39,124 nucleotides of DNA from Octopus bimaculoides (lineage: Eukaryota): the NCBI RefSeq assembly GCF_001194135.2, contig NC_068984.1, positions 131,683,396-131,722,519 of the forward strand, given 5' to 3'. How positions within the stretch are numbered: position 1 is the first letter of the stretch; each line of letters opens with the position of its first letter. The notes under the pieces are model-generated. The model saw only the letters and a list, made by a program, of their open reading frames with translations, did not search any database and had not been told where the DNA came from. This document shows, one piece after another, positions 1 through 37,131 of the stretch. The translations under genes were made by a program, and so were the position numbers.

Positions 1-273
1 AGTCATCGCCTCGGTGAGGCCCAATGTACGAAGGTCTTGCCTCACCACCTCAGCCTAGGTCTTCCTGGGCCTACCTCTTCCACGGGTTCCCTCAACTGTT
101 AGGGTGTGGCACTTTTTCACGCAGCTATCCTCCTCCATTCTCACCACATGTCCATACCAGCGCAATCGTCTCTCTTGCACGCCACAACTGATGCTTCTAA
201 TGTTCAGCTTTTCTCTCAAGATACTTACACTCTGACGGGTATTCACATTGACATTACACATCCAACGGAGCAT
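1..273 (-). mobile_element. RTE-clade LINE fragment (C-terminal part of RT ORF)
   Basis: ORF 55..426 contains LREKLNIRSISCGVQERRLRWYGHVVRM...GRGRPRKT, the typical RTE C-terminal RLRWYGHV/GRGRP motifs; a homologous copy lies at 28690-29290 (+). Confidence 0.85.
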
Positions 274-294
274 ACATATATATATATATATATC

Positions 295-633
295 CAGTGG
301 TTGATGCCAGTGCTGCTGGACTGACTCCCATACTGGTGGCATGTAAAAAGCACCATTTGAGCATGGCGAATGCCAGTGCCATCTGATTGGCTCCCTTGCA
401 GATAGCACATAAAGAGCATTGTTCAAACATGGTCAATGCCAGTGCTGCCAGACTGGCTCCTGTACCGGTGGCACGTAAAAAGCACTGGCTACACTCTGAG
501 AGTGGTTGGCGTTAGGAAGGGCATCCAGCTGTAGAAATCTTACCAGATCAGATTGCAGCCTGGTCCAGCCTCCTGGCCTGCCAGTCCTCAGTTGAACTTT
601 GCAACCCATACCAGCATGAAAAGCGAACATTAA

Positions 634-1205: not shown

Positions 1206-1440
1206 TAGTGTGGCAAGCTGGCAGAAACGTTAGCACGCCGGGCGAAATGCATAGCGGAATTTCGTCTGCCGCTACGTTCTGAGTTCAAATTCCGCCGAGG
1301 TCGACTTTGCCTTTCATCCTTTTGGGGTCGATTAAATAAGTACCAGTTACGCACTGGGGTCGATATAATCGACTTAATCCGTTTGTCTGTCCTTGTTTGT
1401 CCCCCTCTGTGTGTAGCCCCTTGTGGGTAGTAAAGAAATA
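1206..1440 (+). mobile_element. Full-length tRNA-derived SINE with 18-bp TSD
   Basis: A-box-like ggcaagctggcagaa, B-box gagttcaaattcc, core gtcgactttgcctttcatcc; direct repeat acatacatatgtaacaca at 1188-1205 and 1441-1458; near-identical inverted copy at 9273-9502. Confidence 0.9.
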
Positions 1441-3022: not shown

Positions 3023-3688
3023 GCCACATTTGGATGTGTGTGGGAAAAGGAACATGAAAAGAAATAGACAATGGTGGAGAGGAATTATAAGGAAGTCATT
3101 GACAGAAAGTGCAGTAAGAAGGATTGTTGGAGTAGAAGCTAGAAGGTAAAAAATGAGAAGGGATATTAATGATGATAAAGGGTAAAGTGTTTAAAACACA
3201 TCTTTGTTGGAATTGTGTAGATTCTGTGAGAATTGTATATTGCTAAAAAGTGGATTACTTCTTAAGACTTAAAAGTTTCATGCGACTGATTATTCATCAG
3301 CAATACTAAAATAATGAAGCCACAAGCCAGGTACTACCAACAACTTGTTTCACAGTTGGGTGGTCTACATCTAAGCCAGTTTCTTGACCCAGCTTAGCAT
3401 GTAAGGGAGGTGTATAGCACCCAGTTCAGGTAAAAAATATATTATGCCAAAGGCAAAAGAGCTTCTCACAGAGAAACCAAAAGCCAATCATAACTGGAAA
3501 GAAGATAAACACCACCAGATTATCTACCAACACACTTTGCTGGGCATCAACTTATTCTTTGCACAGCAGATTTTCAAAGGAACAATGAGGAAAACATAAT
3601 GGAAAATTGGATATTTGAAGGTGTTGGCTACCTGATTTGTTATGTGGTTAAAGACGTCAAATTCATTTTGTACAAAATTAACCAGCAA

Positions 3689-4107
3689 GAACTTTAGAAA
3701 ATGGTGACAAGTTGATATAAACTTAGATCTTTGTTCCATGTTAAAGTAAGAGTGGAGGATGTTGTGGATTTTCTCTGTAAGATTTAATTATTTAAATTTA
3801 ATTGTTTCTATGTACTAAATAAACTGATGCATTAATCTGTCATCACTGGAGCACTGGATCATTGTATGCATGTACAGGGAATATATAAAGAACATGCAAA
3901 GAAGGAATACATCAGGAACTTTAGCAAATGGTGAAAAGTTGACAAAAACTCAGATCTTTGTTCAGTATTAAAGTAAGAGTGGTGGATGTTGTGGATTGTT
4001 TCTATGTACTAAATTAACTAATGCATGAATGTGTCATCACTAGAGCACTGGATCATTGTATGTATGTACAGGGAATATATCAGGAACATGCAAAGAAGGA
4101 ATGCATA
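3689..4107. repeat. Imperfect tandem duplication (about 227 bp + about 192 bp)
   Basis: gaactttag...gaacatgcaaagaaggaat at 3689-3915 and again at 3916-4107; the second copy lacks an AT-rich internal stretch. Confidence 0.9.
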
Positions 4108-4161
4108 GATATTAATACAGGATGCAGAAAGAATTTGTTTAAGCATTACTTAAGCAAAAAC

Positions 4162-4470
4162 TGTAGTGGTTAAGGTATTCAGCTCATGATCACAAGGCCT
4201 GAGTTCAATTCCTGGTGATGTGTTGTGTCCTTGAGCAAGACACTTTATTTTGCCTTGCTCCAGTCCACTCAGCTGGCAAATATGAATAGTACTTGAATTT
4301 CAAAGGACCAGCCTTGTCACACTCTGTGTCACTCTGAATCTCCCTGACAACTATATTAATTGTATACATGTCTGTGGAGTACTCAGCCACTTGTATGTTA
4401 ATTCCATGAGCAGGCTGTTCCATTAATTAGATCAACTGGAACCCTTGTCATCATAACCGACAGAGAGCCA
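4162..4470 (+). mobile_element. tRNA-derived SINE (second family, possibly Meta-SINE-like core)
   Basis: A-box tgtagtggttaagg, B-box gagttcaattcc, core gtgtccttgagcaagacac...gctccagtccactcagctg; family assignment not verified. Confidence 0.75.
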
Positions 4471-5529
4471 AGCAAAAACTGATAATCAGTTAACAATCTA
4501 TAACAATCGTAAGAGCACTTGCAATAGCAAGGTAAAAATTACCATAGAGAACAGGGAAATCCAGGGAAATAAGAGATGTTCTGTCTCAGAAAAGCATTAT
4601 AAAAATAGTTCAAACAGTGGAATATATTTTATGTTGAGTAAGAAGAGACACCTAATTGTTTAGATATTTGTCCTTGAAAGAAAAAAAAAAAAAGGCAGTA
4701 ACACTGCAACAATGTGTTACGATATTTATTACAATTTCTCTCCCTCTCAAAAGAAGTGACTAAATCATTAGACTTCTCATCTTCATTGCATAAAATATAT
4801 TTAACATTTAAAAAAATTACATTGTCATTGAAAACATTGTAGAGATTACAAAACTTTGTCAGTCTATATTTTAATAAGAACCACGTCTCTCTGTTGATCC
4901 ACTTTTTAGTTAAACAATATTAAAAAATTATTCAGATTTATTAAGCCTTTGCTAAGAATGACAAACTAAATTTCAATACTTTTCAACTAATTAAAAAACG
5001 CCTAATATAATATCTTTTTTGTTTTTTTTGACAATGAAAACAGAGGTAAAGTTAATAACTCTTCCCAATCCTTTCAATGGGAATATGTATTTAAGCTAAA
5101 TTTATTTTATATTAAAGGTAATATTTTGAATGGACAACCTTAAATTTAAATTTTAAATTTTGTTTTTTTGTCATCAGTAAAGTGATGTATTGAACTCGAC
5201 ATATGAAAAATACATAAATGCATGGATGTTTAAGTATGTTAATTAAATAATATGAATAAGTCAATAGCACATAGAGTAAATGTTAGGAATATAAAAGCTT
5301 CATAATAATTATTGATTTTTGTGATGATGGTGATGATGGTATAACATAAAGGATTATAAGCATGTAAGTTCTGGAAATATATGGACCAAACAGACATGTG
5401 GAGGATCTGCATAGAATGGGGAATATGAGTTTGAAATGTGGGATGCAATGTGCTGACTGGGACCTCTTCAGGAAATTTATAAAGACAAGGGAATCTTCAT
5501 GCTGAGATACTGAAATACCAAGTAATATT

Positions 5530-5719
5530 CTTTTCTACTCTAGGCACAAGGCCCAAAATTTGGGGGAGGGGTGGCCAGTCGATTACATCGACACCAGTAC
5601 ACAACTGGTATTTAATTTATCGACCCCTAAAGGATGAAAGGTAATTTGAACTCACAATGTAAAGACAGATGAAATATATAAATATATATACATATATGCA
5701 TACATATATATATATGTGT

Positions 5720-6937: not shown

Positions 6938-7380
6938 GTCAGACAACCTTGTACTTCTTCTACAGCAAGACACCTGTTTCTGTCTCTCTGTCTCACTCTA
7001 ACGCTTTTCATCATCTGACACAAGATCGTCTCCTCCAATGCCTCCTCCCGTTTTGAAATTTTTTTTTATTTTTGTTTTGCAAGTACTTGGTGACCCTGTC
7101 AGTGCAGGTGCCACTTAAAAGCACCCAGTCCACAAGTGGTTGGTGTTTGGAAGGGCATCCAGCTGCAAAAACCTTGCCAAAACTGACCTAGCCTGTGCTT
7201 GTGTCACATAAAAAGCACGAAGTCCACTCTGCTGAGTGGTTGGTGTTAGGAAGAGCATCCAGCTGTAAAAATCCTGCCAAAACAGTCACAGATGTATGGT
7301 GCAGGCTTCTGCCTGGTCAGCTCTTATGAAATGGTCCCACCCATGCTAGCATGGAAGGTGGACGTTAAACAATGATATGA
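6690..7380 (+). mobile_element. Two RTE-tail copies separated by (CT)n
   Basis: Shared tail motifs at 6720-6847 and 7085-7380; (CT)n at about 6852-6935. Confidence 0.7.
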
Positions 7381-7569
7381 CTGCCTTTTTTGTAATTTCC
7401 AAATACCAAATCTACTTGTAAAGGTTTGGTCTGCCCAGGGCTATAGTGAAAGACACTTACTCAAAGTGCTGCTCAGTGGGATTAAACACAAGACTACATG
7501 GCTGGGAAGCAATCTTCTTAATCACCAGTCCATGCCTACCCAAATACTAAATCATGAATTTGTATATAC

Positions 7570-7947
7570 TCTTTTACTTGTTTCAGTCATTTGACTGCGG
7601 CCATGCACCTTTAGTCGAGCAAATCGATCCCAGGATTTATTCTTTGTAAGCCTAGTACTTATTCTATCGGTACCTTTTGCCGAACCGCTAAGATACGGGG
7701 ACGTAAACACACCAGCATCGGCTGTCAAGCGATGTTGGGGGGACAAACACAGACACACAAACACATATATATATACATATATACAACAGGCTTCTTTCAG
7801 TTTCCGTCTACCAAATCCACTCACAAGGCTTTGGTCGGCCTGGGGCTATTAGTAGAAGACACTTGCCCAAGGTGCCACGCAGTGGGACTGAACCCGGAAC
7901 CATGTGGTTGGTAAGCAAGCTACTTACCACACAGCCACTCCTGTGCC
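7570..7947 (-). mobile_element. Near full-length tRNA-derived SINE (third family) with internal (TA)n
   Basis: Minus strand starts ggcacaggagtggctgtgtggtaag (A-box), then ggttccgggttcagtccc (B-box region); ends ...gactgaaacaagtaaaagag; remnants at 5855-6110, 29875-30295 and 32140-32350. Confidence 0.85.
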
Positions 7948-9272: not shown

Positions 9273-9502
9273 TTATTTCTTTACTGCCCACAAGGGGCTA
9301 AACATAGAGGAGACAAACAAGGACAGACAAAAGGATTAAGTCGATTATATCAACCCCAGTGCGTAACTGGTACTTAATTTATCGACCCCGAAAGGATGAA
9401 AGGCAAAGTCGACCTCGGCGGAATTTGAACTCAGAACGCAATGGCAGGCGAAATACCGCTAAGCATTTCGCCCGGTGTGCTAACGTTTCTGCCAGCTCGC
9501 CG
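9273..9502 (-). mobile_element. Full-length tRNA-derived SINE (same family as 1206-1440)
   Basis: Reverse complement aligns along its length to 1212-1440. Confidence 0.9.
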
Positions 9503-15959: not shown

Positions 15960-16260
15960 TTATTGTGCATAGAGCCGACTAGGTCCACCAGTGACCCCCA
16001 ATTGCTAGTGGTCTCATGCCAGCCCCTTTGCATCCTCCAAGAAGATGTCAGGTCTCTGGAGATCTTTAATCATATCCAGCCATCTGGTGCTGGGCCTGCC
16101 ACAGGGCCTCTTCCAGGCCTCAGATGCTGCTTCAAACAAGGTAAGACCCTGGTAGGATGGTCTGGCAGGAGGAAGAGAGCATGTCCGTACCAGTGCATGT
16201 TGCAGACGGCTATGAGGCTGCAGGCTGATGCATGTGCACACGCAACTCTTCAGTCAACTA
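15960..16260 (-). mobile_element. RTE-like LINE C-terminal fragment
   Basis: ORF 16014..16241: WKRPCGRPSTRWLDMIKDLQ, matching the (W)KRPRGRP..RW.D motif of RTE-group ORFs. Confidence 0.7.
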
Positions 16261-19170: not shown

Positions 19171-19269
19171 AAGCCTTTTTAGATATTACTTGTTATGTAT
19201 TGTTTGAGTTAACCAGTCATAAACTAATCCTTATAGAACTGCTATTTTGTGTGTACTATTTTTACCAAG

Positions 19270-19501
19270 TGATGATGGTGACGCAGCTGCGGAATTTTGA
19301 TCCCTTTCACAGAATCTTTTATTTAGTAAACATTTCCTGACAAGAAATGAGAACCCAGGTTCAGAATTTCCCCAAGACACCTGATGAAGGCTGGAGGGTA
19401 TATCAGCCGAAACATTGTGTTAACAACAAACAAGATGAGGACAAATATCCATCAAATGTAAATAACATACATAATTCCTCATCTCTTAAATATAGAACTG
19501 T
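19270..19501 (+). mobile_element. Penelope-like terminal repeat (family A), without tRNA head
   Basis: gaaatgagaacccaggt...aaatatagaactgt matches the arms of 31479-31992 and ends at the identical 3' nucleotide as the right arm. Confidence 0.75.
19376..19421 (+). ncRNA. Minimal type I hammerhead motif (family A), probably inactivated
   Basis: GACAC / CTGATGA-A / GGCTG-gagggtatat-CAGCC / GAAAC / ATT / GTGTT; the G of the GUU triplet is A here (CpG-type change). Confidence 0.65.
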
Positions 19502-19504
19502 ATT

Positions 19505-19870
19505 TTGGTGATTTGTTGTACTTGAGAAGATGTGCCAAGCTCAGTGAAATCATGGCTGTGACCTGTGCTAGTGATGCACAATGGGCGCCTGTGCTGGTGA
19601 CGCATGGTGGACACCCATGCCAGGCAACGCGTGACAGGCACCCATACCAAGCTATGCGGGACTGGCACCCATGCCAGGCATCACGTGATGGGCACCCGTG
19701 CCAAGCATCATATGAAGATGTTAACATTAGGAAGGGCATTCTGCCATAAAAACCAAACCAAAGCAGACAACTTCAGCCTGCTGCAGCTCTCCAGCTTCCC
19801 AGTTTAGGACAAACCATCTAACCCACACCAGCATGGAAAATGGACGTTAAATGATAATGATGATGATTTA
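19505..19870 (+). mobile_element. RTE-type 3' UTR/tail with an internal 27-bp minisatellite
   Basis: Shared tail ttaggaagggcattc...ccagcatggaaaatggacgttaaatgataatgatg; four 27-bp units at 19609-19716. Confidence 0.75.
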
Positions 19871-21034: not shown

Positions 21035-21323
21035 TCATCATCATCGTTTAACGTCCACTTTCCATGCTGGTATGGGTTGGACGGTTTGACTGAGAACTGG
21101 CGAGCCAGATGGCTGCACCAGGCTCCAATCTGGTCTAGCAGAGTTTCTACAGCTGGATGTCCTTCCTAACGCCAACCACTCCGAGAGTGTAGTGGGTGCT
21201 TTTACATGCCACTGGCACGAGGGCCAGTCAGGCGGTACTGGCGACGGCCACACTCAAATGGTGTTTTTTATGTGCCACCTGCACAGGAGCCAGTCCAGCG
21301 ACACTGCCAATGACCTCGCTCAA
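21035..21323 (-). mobile_element. RTE-type 3' tail copy
   Basis: (CAT)n-cgtttaacgtccactttccatgctgg...; homologous to 38795-39124. Confidence 0.8.
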
Positions 21324-21596
21324 ATGTCTGTTTGGTGGTCCAACGCTGGTGCCATCCACTCCAGCTTTATTAGACCTGGTAAGTCAATTACAGCAGATAT
21401 GTACATCAACCAGTTGGATGAAATGATGAGTGAACTTGCGACTAAACAACCAAAATTGGTCAATAGAGACAGGTCAATTCTCTTGCAAGACAACACTCGA
21501 CCACATGTTGCACAAAGAACGCTACTCAAGTTAAATGAACTGAAGTTGGAAATACTCTGTCATCCACCATATTCACCAGACCTTGCACCAACAGAC
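21324..21596 (+). mobile_element. mariner (DD34D) transposase fragment
   Basis: SVWW...LLQDNTRPH...HPPYSPDLAPTD; 34 residues between the last two Asp. Confidence 0.9.
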
Positions 21597-21629
21597 ATTG
21601 CTCATCTAGGTGAAACTTAGTATTGACAA

Positions 21630-27700: not shown

Positions 27701-28689
27701 ATTTGGAATTATCTATCTTTTGTTTTTAAATGTTACTAGAAATTTGTAACAAATTTCAAAACATTAATCTTTGTGAGGCAAAACACCAAATAAATTGTTG
27801 AATCCCTCAATAAAACAGAATTAAGGTAAATTATCAGAATTAGTGATAGCATTAACCACACCAAAGACTAGAGCTTGGTTTAGCTTGTGTAACATTCCTT
27901 GCAGTAACATTTGTGAACTCCTGTTGGTTTTCCTTTAACTACAGTTAATCTTTATGAGGAGCGGAGCAGAAGTGTTTTAATTTTTAATGCTGACATGTGA
28001 AGACATTCCTACTATAGGGACAAGGCCTGAAATTTTGATGGAAGAGGCTGATTGGGTATATCAGCTCCAGTGCTCAACTAGGACTTATATTATTGATCCC
28101 AAAAGAATGAAAGGCAAAAACTGACCTCAGCAGGATTTGAATTCAGAACTGAGTTGGAATACGAAGACATTGCATATGAGCTGTGTTGGTTGTCTCAGTT
28201 CAAATTATCATTTTCAATTTATAGACAGTACTCATGTCATTTTTATTTCTTGAAATTGCTGCTATGCATATTAGAAATTATATTTTGATATTACTATAAT
28301 TTGAGATAGAGAATGAAATAGTAAATCAGTATTAATACGTAAACAGTGCAAGTGACAGCTGGTGAACATTTATCAAAAAGCCCCATATTTTCAATAAATA
28401 ACTTCTGTTGTGGGAACCAACAATGAAATACAATTCATTTTCATTCTCTCTGTGTGCTTAGATTGTCCTAGATTTAACACACTGGTTGGTTTGCAGCAGT
28501 AGAAACTTTTATATTCTCAAAGTTGTTCATTGTATCACAAGAGCTGTGTCGAATATTTCTTCTATGATTAGTGCAAAATTACTACAACTAAGCATGGTGT
28601 ATAATTTTTAAATGCTTTATACACACACAAACACACACACACACACACACATATATACACACACACAAACACATACACATGTACAGAAA

Positions 28690-29874: not shown

Positions 29875-30295
29875 TGTGGTAAGAAGCTTGTTTCCTAACC
29901 ACATGATTCCACGTTCAATCCCACTGCATAGCAAGTGTCTTTGACTATAGCTTCGGGCCAACCAAACCTTTGTGAGTGAATTTGATAGACCAAAACTGAA
30001 AGAAGCCTGTCATGTATATATATGTATGTGTCTTTGCGTCTGTGTTTGTCCCCCCTCCATAGCTTGAGAACTGATGTTGGTGTGTTTATGTCCTCATAAC
30101 TTAGCAGTTTGGCAAAAGAGACTAATAGAATAAGTACTAGGCTTACAAAGAATAAGTCCTGGGGTCAATTTCTTTGACGAAAACCCTTTGAGGCAGTGCT
30201 CCAGCATGGCCATAAGTTTACATAGCTGCTGGTGGCATGAGTTGAAATCCTGTTAAATGAGAGAAACATGACTGAAACATGTAGAAGAATAAAAG
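29875..30295 (+). mobile_element. tRNA-derived SINE (family of 7570-7947)
   Basis: tgtgtggtaagaagcttg, cgttcaatccc, ccttgtgagtgaatttg, gcagtgctccagcatggcc. Confidence 0.75.
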
Positions 30296-30514: not shown

Positions 30515-30950
30515 AGGTGAGGTGGCAGAATCATTAGCACCAAAGAAAAATGCTTAGCAGTATTTCTCCTGACTAATTACATTCTGAATTCAAATTCTGT
30601 TGGGGTCAACTTTGCCTTTCATCTCTTCAAGATCAATAAAATAGGTACCGGTCAAGTACTGGTGTTGATGTAATCAATTTAACCCCTTCCCACCAAATAT
30701 TTGGCTTTGTTCTTACAGTAGAAAGAATTATTATGTCTGAGTAGGGTAGTGGGTTGGCAGAATCAGTAGAGCTGTGTGTGTTTTCGGGGTGGGGGGATAC
30801 TTTGTGGTGTTTGTTCCAGCTCTTTATGTTCTGAGTTCAAATACAGCCATAGTCAACTTTCTCTGATATCCTTCTGGGGTCAATAAAATAAAATACCACT
30901 CAAGTACTGGAATTGATTTAATCAAGTAACACCTTCCTCTAAATTGCTTG
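30515..30950 (+). mobile_element. Two adjacent decayed tRNA-derived SINEs
   Basis: Each has a ggcagaatc head, gagttcaaat/gaattcaaat B-box and gtcaactttgcctttcatc-like core. Confidence 0.7.
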
Positions 30951-31531
30951 CCTTGTTGTGCCTAAATTAGAGATTTAATTATGAGTCCTGAGTTGACTTC
31001 AGATTTGGGCTTTACTGAGATTCAGTTACTTTAAAATGAGTAATTTAATGACAATATTAAGGTTAATTATTGTAGTGGATCATCTGAAGTTCTAAAATTA
31101 ATCATTGGAATTATCTTTTGTTAGTTAAGCTGTATCAAAATAAAATCTCTTTCTTTTACTTCGACTATGACTATAATGGGACACCACCTTGAAGGGATTC
31201 GTTGAACAAATTGACCCCAGTACATCTTTTTAAAGCCTAATATTTATTCTATTAATCTCTCTGCTGAACCACTCAGTTATGAAGATGTAAACAATCCAAC
31301 ACCAGTTGTCAAATGGTAGTAGGGGACACACACATACACATTTGCCACAGAATCTCCCAAAACTAGACACCAATATCTAAGCATTATCTAAGCCTAATTA
31401 GATTACCTGTGAAGGAAAAAAACAACCAATAACAATGTAAGTTATCTTCACAACCTATGAATCTACAAACACTTTTCATTATTTACATTATTTACATTTG
31501 ACGGATATTTGTCCTCATCTTGTTTGTTGTT

Positions 31532-31577
31532 AACACAACGTTTCGGCTGATATACCCTCCAGCCTTCGTCAGGTGTC
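31532..31577 (-). ncRNA. Minimal type I hammerhead motif (family A), intact
   Basis: Minus strand: GACAC / CTGACGA-A / GGCTG-gagggtatat-CAGCC / GAAAC / GTT / GTGTT; 5-bp stem I, 5-bp stem II, palindromic ACGU stem III. Confidence 0.75.
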
Positions 31578-31646
31578 TTGGGGAAATTTCAAACCTGGGT
31601 TCTCATTCCTAACGATGTTACTATTATTATTATTACTATTATTAAT

Positions 31647-31674
31647 NNNNNNNNNNNNNNNNNNNNNNNNNNNN
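31647..31674. other. Assembly gap inside the left arm of the palindrome
   Basis: 28 N; similar in size to the missing B-box/3' head segment seen in the right arm. Confidence 1.
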
Positions 31675-31722
31675 CTCGGAACCTTGGGGTTAGTAGCCCG
31701 CGCTCTTAACCACTACGCCATA

Positions 31723-31790
31723 TGGCGTAGTGGTTAAGAGCGCGGGCTACTAACCCCAAGGTTCCGAATTCGATTCACGGCAGCGACCTG
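31723..31790 (+). promoter_or_regulatory. tRNA-like Pol III internal promoter (A and B box); mirror copy on minus strand from 31720
   Basis: TGGCGTAGTGG (A-box), anticodon-like arm GGG-CTACTAA-CCC, gaattcgattc (B-box-like; left arm reads gag before the gap). Confidence 0.7.
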
Positions 31791-31863
31791 GTTAATAATA
31801 GTAATAATAATAATAATATAATAATAGTAACATCGTTAGAACCCAGGTTCGAAATTTCCCCAA

Positions 31864-31909
31864 GACACCTGACGAAGGCTGGAGGGTATATCAGCCGAAA
31901 CGTTCTGTT
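31864..31909 (+). ncRNA. Minimal type I hammerhead motif (family A) with a stem I mismatch
   Basis: GACAC / CTGACGA-A / GGCTG...CAGCC / GAAAC / GTT / CTGTT; the first stem I pair is C-C. Confidence 0.7.
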
Positions 31910-32139
31910 AACAACAACAAACAAGATGAGGACAAATATCCGTCAAATGTAAATAATGTAAATAATTCCTCATCTCTTAAATATAGAACTGTAAACACTT
32001 TTCACTTTACAAGAATAAAGGATAACTCAGAATAATAATACTGTGATCATTAGAAATTCATAATCAAGCATAACGAATGTATATTATATGATGTTATATA
32101 ATGTATATTATATGTTATATAAATATAAACACATACACA

Positions 32140-32350
32140 CACACACAGTGGACTTCTTTCAGTTTTTGTCCACCAAATCCACTTACTCGGTTTTGGCCTG
32201 CTCAAGACTATAGTGAAAGACATTTGTCCAAGGATCCATGCAGTGAGACTGAACTTGGAACCATGTAGTTGGGAAGAAAACTTCTTTCATTCACTAAAAC
32301 ACAAGACCAGGAATATAAGAATTATGTAGGTGCAGGCTGGCTGTGTGGTA
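32140..32350 (-). mobile_element. tRNA-derived SINE 5' part
   Basis: Aligns to 7790-7947. Confidence 0.7.
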
Positions 32351-34851: not shown

Positions 34852-37131
34852 TTTTATATCCTTCTGTACATTGGATATAGAGATTTCATGAAGCGGGCAT
34901 AGATGCAACTGTCTTCACATGATGTACTTCAAATTACTCCAATAAATACAAGTTCTCAGTGACTTCCTACGACTTCCACGAACTCTTAATGACTCCTACA
35001 GCTTCTCATCTCAACCAATACGCTACTCTTTATAAAAGTTTGGCTAGTCCATTCTTCCAATCCCACGAGGGTTTCAATGACTCTTGCCACATCTCCCTGT
35101 TTGAGATTTACTTCCTAGGGAAGTTTAATATTTCTTCCATTTAGGAACTACTTCCAATTGTTCTGTTTGTTTCCTCTTTCTTGTGTTGCTAAGCCTAAGT
35201 TCGACATCTTGTGGAGTTGGGACATCAAAAGTGTCGTAGAGCTCTTCCATAGGTATCTCTTGTCTTTTGTGTTCCCATTTGTCGCCTCTTATACATGTCA
35301 TTTTGCCTATTCATTTTGTTACTACTCCGTCTTCCCAACCTTCTCTTCCATTTTTATATATTTTGAAAAACACCTTGTCACCAATATTAAAATACTTTGT
35401 CATATTTTTAATGGTTTCCCTATTTGATTTTCTTACTGGTAACAACTTGTCAAAAATTGACTTTATTTTATGAGCAAACATTAGTTCTGCAGACGACTTG
35501 CCTTAACAAGTGTTTGGGTTTGGTGTTATCCTATAAACCCTCAAGAATTGTGTCAATGTTGCGTCATCAACTAGCTCATTTCTTGATTTCTTTAATGCCC
35601 TTCTAAATGTATCCACAAACCATTCCACTTACCCATTTGATCTTGGGTGACCTGGCTGAGTAGAGATGTGTTCAATTGCGTACATTTTGCAAAAATTTAA
35701 ACTCATACACTGCAAAGAGTTCATGAAGAAATTCTATTGTTACTGTAGAGGTTGGTTTCCTACATCTGCATATTTCCATCTACTTACTATAACTATCTAC
35801 TACAATCAAGTAACATGCACCATTTACTGGTCCAGCAAAATCTATATGAAGCCTGGTCCATGGACTGTCGGTTTTAGGGCATGCTTGGAATTTTACCAGT
35901 GGTGACTTGGCTGCAAGGGCACAACTTCTGCAGTATTTCACCAACTCTTCAAAGTCACAGTTTATTGCAGGCCAATATACATAATCTCTCATTAGTGATT
36001 TCATTCTCAAAATCCCTGGGTGACCAATATGAAATTCCTTTAATAAATGCTTTTGTAGTGCAGCTGGCAATACAACTCTTTGTACATATATCAACACATT
36101 GTCACAGTGAGAAATGGCTCACATTTGTGTTGTGCATATTTTTATTGTCTTTAGCCTTCAGTGTGTCTTTCATTTTTATAATGAATTTATCATTCTCCAA
36201 TTTTGCTTTTATGTTTGCTAACGTAACTGGCAGTTCACAAATGACATTGCACAAAACATTTTTAATTTCATTTTCCACTCGCAAAGCGGCAATCACAGTA
36301 TCTGCAAATGGTTATGCATTTTTAAAAATCAGTCTTGATAGACAACCTGCAAGGCTTAATTTCTTGGATGGTACGTACTTCATCTTGAAATTGTAGTTTA
36401 ATAATATCATAGCCCAGTGTATTGAACAGGAAACTTCTCTCACTGAAAATTTTCAATAACAATTTGTTTCATCGAAACATGTATTTTTTGGCAGAATATA
36501 GTTATAGTATTTTTCGTGTTCGGCAGAGGGATAATCTTCTTAAAAGTAGTCGTACCTTTTCATTATCCATCCAGTTTTTGCATTCCTCTTAGAAGATTTC
36601 TTCATATCTTCAGAAATATGCAGAAAAAGTAATACCTTTTTTTGGGGTTATAACTAAATTCTGCAATTGTGTTTGCTACGCCATCTGGCGAGCATGAACT
36701 GAAGTATTTTTGGACTTTAACATTAATTCCAGCAACTGTTGGTATTGTTGTTGTTGTAATTGCTGCTGTAACTGCTGTTGTAACTGCACTACGGAGGCTA
36801 ATAAATCTTCAATGTTAACTAACTTTTCTTTGATTTTGTATCAAACCTCTGATGTAAGCTTTGAATAAACTCGTCGCCACTTTTTTTATCCTTCTATACA
36901 TTGGATATACAGATTCCATGAAGCGGGGATAGACACAACTGTCTTCACCCAACAGACTTCAAGTTATTCCACGAAACATGATACTCCAATAAATACAAAC
37001 TCTCAACAACTTCCACAAACTCTCAACTACTCCTATGACTTCTTGTATCAACCAATATGCTACTCTTTATAAGAGTTCGGCTAGTGCATTTTTCCAATCA
37101 CATACAGGTGTCAATGACTTGCACCACAACA
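34852..37131 (-). mobile_element. Internally deleted Ty3/Gypsy LTR retrotransposon
   Basis: LTRs 34852-35091 and 36882-37131; PBS TGGCGACGAG (36879-36870); PPT AAACAGGGAGA (35102-35092); TSD caaac (34847-34851, 37132-37136); gag remnant, end of RNase H and integrase. Confidence 0.9.
35780..36097 (-). pseudogene. Gypsy integrase fragment (HHCC zinc-binding domain and first catalytic Asp)
   Basis: HIGHPGI.RMKSL...YVYWP...C..C...PWTRLHIDFAGP...IVVDSYSK. Confidence 0.9.

Follow-up and report, generated by a model that had tools for sequence, protein, structure and literature searches.

Two head-to-head tRNA-like units with hammerhead tails in Octopus bimaculoides: a candidate SINE-type element dependent on Penelope-like machinery

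Short interspersed elements (SINEs) are defined by their dependence on the machinery of long interspersed elements (LINEs), and their classification lists SINE ends by LINE clade. What kind of element, then, is a short unit with a tRNA-like head whose 3' end carries the ribozyme of a Penelope-like element (PLE), and why does it lie in the genome as two copies facing each other head to head? We address this question for a locus of Octopus bimaculoides at 31467-32004 of a 39,124-nucleotide stretch of DNA (RefSeq assembly GCF_001194135.2, contig NC_068984.1, positions 131,683,396 to 131,722,519 of the forward strand). This whole stretch is called the window, and coordinates refer to it. Our preferred answer, to which we give a probability of roughly 55%, is a PLE-dependent, tRNA-headed, non-autonomous element that inserted once, as a self-primed fold-back. 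Its unit would consist of a tRNA-derived head with an internal promoter for RNA polymerase III (Pol III), an (AAT)n spacer, and a PLE-hammerhead tail of about 170 nt.

The first question is what the letters contain. Positions 31479-31992 form a 514-position inverted repeat with zero spacer and with its arms head to head. The axis falls between 31721 and 31722, inside CCATATGG, where CCAT meets ATGG. The right arm (31722-31992, plus strand) is a full 271-nt unit of head, (AAT)n, and tail. The left, inverted arm (31479-31721, minus strand) spans 243 positions including 28 N and aligns to the right arm with 206 matches and 2 substitutions; from left to right, it holds the tail minus its last 26 nt, an (ATT)n run, a gap, and the head's first 47 nt. 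Complementarity is 100% over the inner 46 nt and over one outer block of 54 nt, and 92% over a block of 92 nt. An earlier note on this DNA had described a 514-bp inverted repeat centred on CATATG, with arms that read outward as tRNA-like head, (AAT)n spacer, and hammerhead tail; the arm coordinates and the right-arm sequence agree with this description.

The palindrome is bracketed by an exact 12-nt direct repeat, AAACACTTTTCA, read here as a target-site duplication (TSD), with its left copy at 31467-31478 and its right copy at 31993-32004. Base 31478 can be assigned to the left arm or to the TSD, an ambiguity of 1 nt. Among 37,637 start positions in the window, AAACACTTTTCA is the sole 12-mer that recurs at a spacing of 520-532 nt. 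The genomic flanks of the duplicated site are TATGAATCTAC outside the left copy and CTTTACAAG on the other side. The 2 ends of the palindrome are unequal: a 26-nt 3' extension, TCCTCATCTCTTAAATATAGAACTGT (31967-31992, plus strand), is carried by the right arm and missing from the left. The same extension occurs in a solo copy of the tail elsewhere in the window and in a predicted octopus protein, P0001. The end base of the right arm is also the end base of the solo copy, at 19501. The 12-bp bracket, the shared end, and the left arm's shortfall of about 26 nt, all claimed in the earlier note, are thus confirmed. Its proposal of a single insertion event gains support because one TSD pair encloses the whole structure.

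A near-perfect inverted repeat of 514 bp with a flanking direct repeat is also what a foldback-type DNA transposon, or a miniature inverted-repeat transposable element, would leave, the long terminal inverted repeats making up the whole element. We consider this scarcely credible. Its ends would have to differ by 26 nt on one side only, and a single arm that shares the 3' end stands by itself at 19501 and in P0001. The content (tRNA head, hammerhead) is retroelement-like, and a 12-bp duplication is unusual for cut-and-paste families.

Is the second arm real? Three runs of N lie in the window, and one of them (31647-31674, an assembly gap of 28 N) falls inside the left arm, where it replaces about 22 nt of the left head in the B-box region. 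The left contig stops at 31646 in the (ATT)n run, a typical break point for short-read contigs, and the right contig begins at 31675, which leaves 47 nt between the gap and the axis. In a symmetric structure, about 22 nt (the counterpart of right-arm 31769-31790) would be missing, against 28 N written; since these sizes fit, the order, orientation, and spacing across the gap are those of a symmetric palindrome. The junction of direct repeat and inverted tail, between 31478 and 31479, is read within the left contig, and the axis is read within the right contig. The 2 copies of AAACACTTTTCA sit in different contigs, for which the chance in unrelated contigs is roughly 1e-6 (empirically, 1 in 37,637 starts). 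The bases at the gap edges, 31646 and 31675, mismatch the opposite arm and may be contig-end errors.

A locus that is truly single-armed could have been turned into a palindrome by a mirrored hairpin at a contig end or by a wrong join over the 28-N gap. Such an artefact would account for the location of the gap within the left arm and for the opening of the right contig, whose 46 nt are exactly reverse complementary to the next 46 nt; PLE tandem and inverted structures are, moreover, known to disturb short-read assemblies (PMC8557442). Yet substitutions and indels distinguish the arms, as the earlier note had argued against an assembly mirror, and this argument holds. With both critical junctions inside contigs and a direct repeat that ties the 2 contigs to one event, an assembly mirror is unlikely, and we leave it only a small share of the probability. 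The flanks are not reverse complements of each other, and two alleles scaffolded back to back are thereby also ruled out.

The differences between the arms carry information on their history. Of 208 positions that can be compared, 2 are substituted (1.0%); the arms also differ by a 7-nt indel, by an additional AAC, and in the length of the AAT run, in agreement with the differences reported before. The solo copy, P0001, and a second predicted protein, P0002, provide 3 further copies for comparison. The 7-nt deletion, a G-to-C change, and the extra AAC are private to the right arm, and one C-to-T change at a CpG is private to the left arm; at all 4 alignable differences, the 3 other copies side with one arm against the other. 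With every alignable difference private to one arm, it is probable that insertion yielded identical arms, which later decayed to about 1% divergence. The tail diverges from the solo copy by 5.5-8%, against 1.0% between the arms, which suggests that the insertion is young relative to its family. The private changes and the perfectly symmetric axis favour a fold-back onto nascent complementary DNA (cDNA) over the use of 2 independent RNAs.

Two separate events could also produce facing arms, either by a second, opposite insertion at the 5' end of the first copy or by a later inverted duplication at the DNA level. PLEs tend to insert in or beside older copies (PMC6765202), and the locus of the solo tail resembles such a case. 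Here, the symmetry is perfect and the axis has no spacer, one TSD pair surrounds the whole with no internal TSD, and a DNA duplication would not abut the truncated inverted tail exactly on the left TSD copy. We therefore regard a two-step origin as very improbable.

If the structure is real and arose at once, which machinery made it? The tail points to PLEs. This module (31826-31992, plus strand) is common to the solo copy at 19322-19501 (nhmmer E about 1e-56) and contains a predicted minimal hammerhead. In the right arm, the ribozyme lies at 31864-31909 (plus strand), with predicted cleavage at 31904/31905; in the left arm, it lies at 31532-31577 (minus strand), with helix I intact at 5 bp. 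The catalytic boxes CUGANGA (31869-31875) and GAAA (31897-31900), both on the plus strand, stand in type I order, are mirrored in the left arm, and recur at 19381. The left-arm ribozyme reads GACAC CUGACGA A GGCUGG-loop-UCAGCC GAAA CG UU GUGUU, where the loop between the helix II strands is AGGGUAUA, and cleavage is predicted after GAAACGUU. An A is bulged at 31876, helix II (GGCUGG/UCAGCC) is long, with 6 bp including one G-U pair, and the G10.1-C11.1 pair is present. There is no real helix III: GAAA-CG-UU gives the palindrome ACGU (15.2-16.2) in both arms, through which two molecules could pair as a dimer. In the solo copy, the palindrome is broken to ACAU, and the hammerhead (19376-19421) is weakened by the corresponding G-to-A change at position 16.2. 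Helix I (GACAC/GUGUU), within the 4-5 bp that mark the short helix I of this class, has 5 of 5 pairs in the left arm and the solo copy and 4 of 5 in the right arm, where the G-to-C change at 31905 abolishes the closing pair.

These features are the ones listed for PLE minimal hammerheads by Cervera & de la Pena 2014 (PMC4209133), whose rules we encoded in a strict descriptor script with 300 shuffles as control. The descriptor matches exactly twice in the window, once in each arm, and never in the 300 shuffles; a relaxed version additionally finds the solo copy with its mutated position 16.2. Feature by feature, the predicted tail hammerhead is of the PLE minimal type in every sequence property given for that class, as the earlier note had proposed for the terminal repeat. 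In Schistosoma, paired minimal hammerheads occur on opposite strands 100-700 bp apart (PMC4209133), the same opposite-strand arrangement as in the octopus palindrome. Most likely, the hammerhead belongs to the module by which a PLE enzyme recognises its template. Efficient self-cleavage is improbable in this setting, since it would sever the head from the 3' end. A further match of the relaxed descriptor, in its variant with a U3-A8 core, lies in AT-rich sequence at 35453 (minus strand); its helix II has 5 bp, its loop measures 3 nt, and it is probably due to chance.

The other end of the unit hints at Pol III. The head (31722-31788, plus strand) corresponds to tRNA positions 7-73. Its A box, TGGCGTAGTGG (31723-31733, plus strand), begins one base from the axis and agrees at 11 of 11 positions with the established consensus TRGCNNAGTGG. 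A B-box-like sequence, AATTCGATTCA (31767-31777, plus strand), retains its core TTCGANNC intact and starts 44 nt past the start of the A box, which is tRNA spacing. At a relaxed threshold, ARAGORN needs 6 hypothetical nt of 5' acceptor strand before it folds the head into a 73-nt cloverleaf like that of tRNA-Ser(ACT). On these features, we read the head as a degenerate derivative of a tRNA, with its start at tRNA position 7 in both arms. The description of 2 complete units must be amended accordingly, as each head starts about 6 nt short of a full one. The head is unrelated to the abundant octopus SINEs of the window. It may resemble the heads of MIR/CORE-type SINEs, a likeness that we do not use as evidence.

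Behind the head, an (AAT)n-rich spacer (31792-31830, plus strand) leads to the tail. No TTTT occurs within the right-arm unit, and the first run of 4 T (31999-32002) lies in the right TSD copy, 6 nt past the end of the unit, where it could serve as a Pol III terminator. A T4-free unit with a T4 run downstream fits Pol III read-through, without proving it. A side effect of the geometry is seen at 31677-31766, where the only Rfam matches, to mir-3160 (59.9 bits against a gathering score of 80) and to mir-885, fall below threshold. They arise solely because the axis is a perfect 46-bp hairpin, and genome annotations can in this way overcount microRNAs at fold-backs.

The anatomy of the insertion can be compared with that of known PLEs. 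PLE inserts often carry an inverted, 5'-truncated copy directly at their 5' end and a "tail" of 30-40 bp, often at one end only (Craig 2021, PMC8557442). Rotifer PLE inserts are bounded by inverted pseudo-long terminal repeats (pLTRs); their TSDs measure 8-10 bp, and one of the inverted repeats bears a 31-bp tail (Arkhipova 2013, PMC3846280). Head-to-head is the commonest PLE arrangement, and junction palindromes have been interpreted as the result of self-priming (PMC3846280). The octopus locus shares the inverted copy placed head to head, the palindromic junction (46 + 46 nt, zero spacer), the 3' tail at one end (although 26 nt here against the 30-40 bp reported), and the short TSD (12 bp and exact here against 8-10 bp in rotifers). 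A terminal module with a hammerhead and a part played by (AAT)n/(AAC)n are further common traits. The locus differs in that the octopus unit has neither an open reading frame (ORF) for reverse transcriptase (RT) and GIY-YIG nor a direct pair of pLTRs. The match to PLE anatomy anticipated by the earlier note is therefore seen in the fold-back, the palindromic junction, the short TSD, and the one-sided 3' extension. At the level of sequence, there is good support both for a ribozyme of PLE-type chemistry and for an insertion anatomy of PLE type; the SINE family, the Pol III drive, and a PLE with the same tail are hypotheses.

How might such a unit have been copied? Under our preferred reading, Pol III would start upstream of the A box, traverse the T4-free unit, and stop in flanking T runs. 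A PLE enzyme would recognise the pLTR-like tail, nick the target, and prime cDNA on the 3' end of the RNA; this primary cDNA would correspond to the right arm with its complete 3' end. Near the 5' end of the RNA, the polymerase would switch to its own nascent cDNA, by self-priming or snap-back, and copy back to give the inverted left arm. Copying back would have halted 26 nt before the primer-proximal end, leaving an extension on one side only, and joining across a 12-bp staggered cut would have produced the duplication of AAACACTTTTCA.

Several results weigh against this reading. The only other DNA copy of the tail, the solo copy, has it behind a different 5' sequence. We searched for head and tail in about 80 kb of DNA, namely the window, 20 kb of an O. 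bimaculoides chromosome (L001), and a 20-kb non-octopus contig of the European Nucleotide Archive (L002), the last two reached through an integrase query; nhmmer found no second locus with head and tail together in this set, and no copy of either part beyond the palindrome and the solo tail. Exact-pattern scans for the hammerhead or the head in metagenome, viral, and prokaryote collections, which hold no octopus data, returned 0 matches. Neither an RT nor a GIY-YIG domain was found in the window, by Pfam on ORFs of at least 70 aa or by motif regular expressions, so the link to PLEs is drawn from the type of ribozyme and the insertion anatomy. Rfam hammerhead models gave no match in the window at gathering threshold or at E<=10; this miss is expected, because minimal PLE hammerheads have no helix III. 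On the side of the head, the B box has 2 flanking mismatches, tRNA positions 1-6 are absent in both arms, and neither the Rfam tRNA model (even at E<=10) nor ARAGORN detects a tRNA in the native head. The left head lies partly in the assembly gap, and its B-box half is unread. The 271-nt unit itself is without an ORF; with no RT or GIY-YIG domain in the window, it would be non-autonomous at best.

In our main rival explanation, the locus is a one-off chimeric retrocopy. A PLE enzyme working on a hammerhead-tail RNA (a PLE transcript or a fragment of one) would have jumped, by way of (AAT)n microhomology, to an unrelated tRNA-like or short SINE RNA and then folded back. Head and tail are joined in this one event only, the head is 5'-truncated, and the solo copy joins the tail to another 5' sequence precisely at the point where (AAT)n begins. 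PLEs have been proposed to jump between templates, and to pick up foreign sequence, by way of (AAT)n/(AAC)n (PMC3846280). A tail found in at least 2 different 5' contexts does not separate the explanations, as it is expected of a borrowed 3' module and of a one-off chimera alike. Against the chimera, a head-(AAT)n SINE copy without the tail was not found by nhmmer in the window, L001, or L002 either. The unit is also laid out in full like a functional SINE, with A and B boxes, a T4-free interior, and a defined 3' end. The octopus sequence sampled is too small for copy counting; L001 has other repeats in common with the window at 75-84% identity. A one-off chimera thus keeps a real, if clearly minor, chance of being correct. 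On balance, the PLE-dependent element remains our preferred reading, and we think that the unit probably belongs to a SINE-type family that depends on PLEs, with head and tail seen together in this event only.

How does such a unit relate to known systems? Among its closest parallels are Sm-alpha and Sj-alpha of schistosomes, reportedly described by Ferbeyre in 1998 and by Laha in 2000. These are SINE-like, Pol III-type, hammerhead-bearing elements (reviewed in PMC6765202). Like them, the octopus unit is short and non-coding, is putatively transcribed by Pol III (as judged from its sequence), and has a presumed promoter part followed by a hammerhead; the genomes with Sm-alpha and Sj-alpha also contain PLEs with hammerheads (PMC4209133). 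The Sm-alpha hammerhead is of the canonical, efficient type I and the element often forms tandem arrays, whereas the octopus ribozyme is of the minimal PLE type, thought to act only as a dimer. The octopus unit appears dispersed, the copy described here is a head-to-head fold-back, and the sequences are unrelated.

The non-LTR retrozymes of animals consist of hammerhead repeats in tandem (Cervera & de la Pena 2020, PMC7229834) and have been proposed to depend on PLEs (Li et al. 2026, 10.64898/2026.07.22.740005). They share with the octopus unit a non-autonomous, hammerhead-bearing, AT-rich make-up of a few hundred bp. Retrozymes are, however, head-to-tail tandems with canonical type I hammerheads and circular RNAs; the octopus unit shows no direct tandem at the palindrome or at the solo copy, has one minimal hammerhead per unit, and carries a tRNA-like head. 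In PLEs themselves, pLTRs suffice for the trans-mobilisation of unrelated sequence, and unrelated sequence has been captured beside pLTRs (PMC3846280). The octopus case differs in its cargo, a tRNA-like Pol III head rather than a host gene, and in its size of just 271 nt. The concept of a PLE-dependent short element thus has precedents in Sm-alpha/Sj-alpha, in trans-mobilisation through pLTRs, and in retrozymes as PLE dependants.

With tRNA-derived SINEs that carry LINE tails (RTE, L2, CR1), among them the abundant octopus SINEs of the window, the octopus unit has a layout in common: a tRNA-like head, a body, a putatively borrowed 3' module, and a TSD. It differs from these LINE-partnered SINEs in a 3' module that bears a PLE-type hammerhead and in its fold-back insertion anatomy. 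In octopus repeat surveys, the majority of SINEs are unclassified or assigned to tRNA-Core or tRNA-Deu. Among the papers searched in full text, none describes a SINE that combines a tRNA head with a PLE-type end, whether from octopus or from another organism.

A broader proposal is that octopuses have a SINE family with a PLE partner instead of a LINE, which perhaps spreads with a preference for palindromes that prime themselves. The start of Pol III transcription, some 10 nt before the A box, would here fall within the opposite arm; transcripts of a fold-back copy would begin with a perfect 5' hairpin, and the end of their cDNA would snap back, giving the same axis in daughter copies. We put this forward tentatively and consider it doubtful.

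If the proposed dependence is correct, a tRNA-headed SINE with a PLE-type end would represent a new partner class and the first such SINE. It would link the orphan minimal hammerheads, present in thousands in animal genomes, with Pol III-transcribed non-autonomous elements and with the recently proposed dependence of animal retrozymes on PLEs. Fold-back copies would, in addition, be ready sources of long hairpin RNA in an animal with massive adenosine-to-inosine editing. The locus is also a compact natural record of PLE integration, a poorly understood process in which self-priming and the formation of the "tail" are unexplained: since the unit measures just 271 nt, a single short segment of sequence displays both junctions, the axis, the 26-nt extension at one end, and the TSD. 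Should the locus prove to be a single chimera, its value would hardly go beyond that of a neat case of template switching by a PLE.

Further observations concern the tail outside the palindrome. The solo copy is annotated at 19252-19501 (plus strand), with homology from about 19322 and a different 5' part. In front of the tail, this copy has about 70 nt with no likeness to a tRNA and no (AAT)n, and its 5' sequence diverges from that of the palindrome exactly where (AAT)n begins. A candidate TSD for this copy is TATTTTG(G)TG. The translated tail ORF (19347-19508) matches only 2 of 5.8 billion proteins, both from O. bimaculoides. One of them, P0001, is a 51-aa "protein" that is merely the tail ORF. 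The other, P0002, is the O. bimaculoides dystrobrevin beta isoform X1, whose N-terminus (GEGWRVYQPKCCVNNKQDEDKYPSK) is translated tail including the hammerhead region. The break in P0002 after YPSK coincides with the step from AAAT to GTAAAT in the element, which suggests a splice donor supplied by the element. Judged by the solo copy in the window and these 2 derived proteins, the tail is a multi-copy octopus sequence.

Immediately before the solo copy (here taken as 19252-19510), a relic of about 40 nt at 19204-19251 resembles the 3' part of the tail. TATAGAACTGCTATTTTGTG at 19232-19251 matches TATAGAACTGTATTTTGGTG at 19491-19510, and the resemblance past about 30 nt is only marginal. The locus looks, from these matches, like a newer copy inserted just downstream of an older relic. 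We considered a retrozyme-like tandem with a period of 259 nt at this locus and rejected it: Tandem Repeats Finder (TRF) found nothing, the similarity past about 30 nt was reached by 5 of 500 shuffles, and the flank-only part was not significant. The sequence upstream of the solo insertion is strongly similar to the last 11 nt of the element (10 of 11). At the palindrome, the corresponding comparison of TATGAATCTAC (31456-31466, upstream of the left TSD) with TATAGAACTGT (31982-31992) gives 6 of 11 ungapped and 8 gapped, which is not significant. Target choice may involve pairing with the 3' end of the element, as hinted by the solo insertion and not significantly so at the palindrome. Downstream of the solo tail, at 19612-19707, lies a 27-nt tandem repeat (CACCCATGCCAAGCAACGCGTGACAGG; 3.6 copies, 75% identity) that is richer in G+C than its surroundings.

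The surroundings of the palindrome are themselves repetitive. Its flanks at 31167-31340 and 32123-32304 form a copy of another octopus SINE-like repeat, with paralogues at 7611-7925 (plus strand) and 29881-30181 (minus strand). Within the (CA/TA)n region of this repeat sits an extra segment of about 245 nt (31341-31466 plus 32005-32122), with ACACATACAC-like runs at both outer junctions. The palindrome lies within this extra segment, so the site is nested at least 2 levels deep. An abundant tRNA-derived octopus SINE (sense GTTCAAATTCCGCCGAGGTCGAC) occurs at 1214-1375 (minus strand), 5524-5644, 9338-9497, 28017-28148, and 30520-30710 of the window, and in L001 at 3440-4240, 7290-7480, and 9300-9470. 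Pfam matches among window ORFs of at least 70 aa were limited to Transposase_1 and Integrase_H2C2, which mark a mariner transposase fragment and an integrase zinc-binding fragment of an LTR retrotransposon. Two LINE-like C-terminal fragments were recognised by eye only, from a GRPxxxW motif. Taken together, these relics lie at 21192-21620 (plus strand), 35780-36097 (minus strand), 55-426 (minus strand), and 16014-16241 (minus strand).

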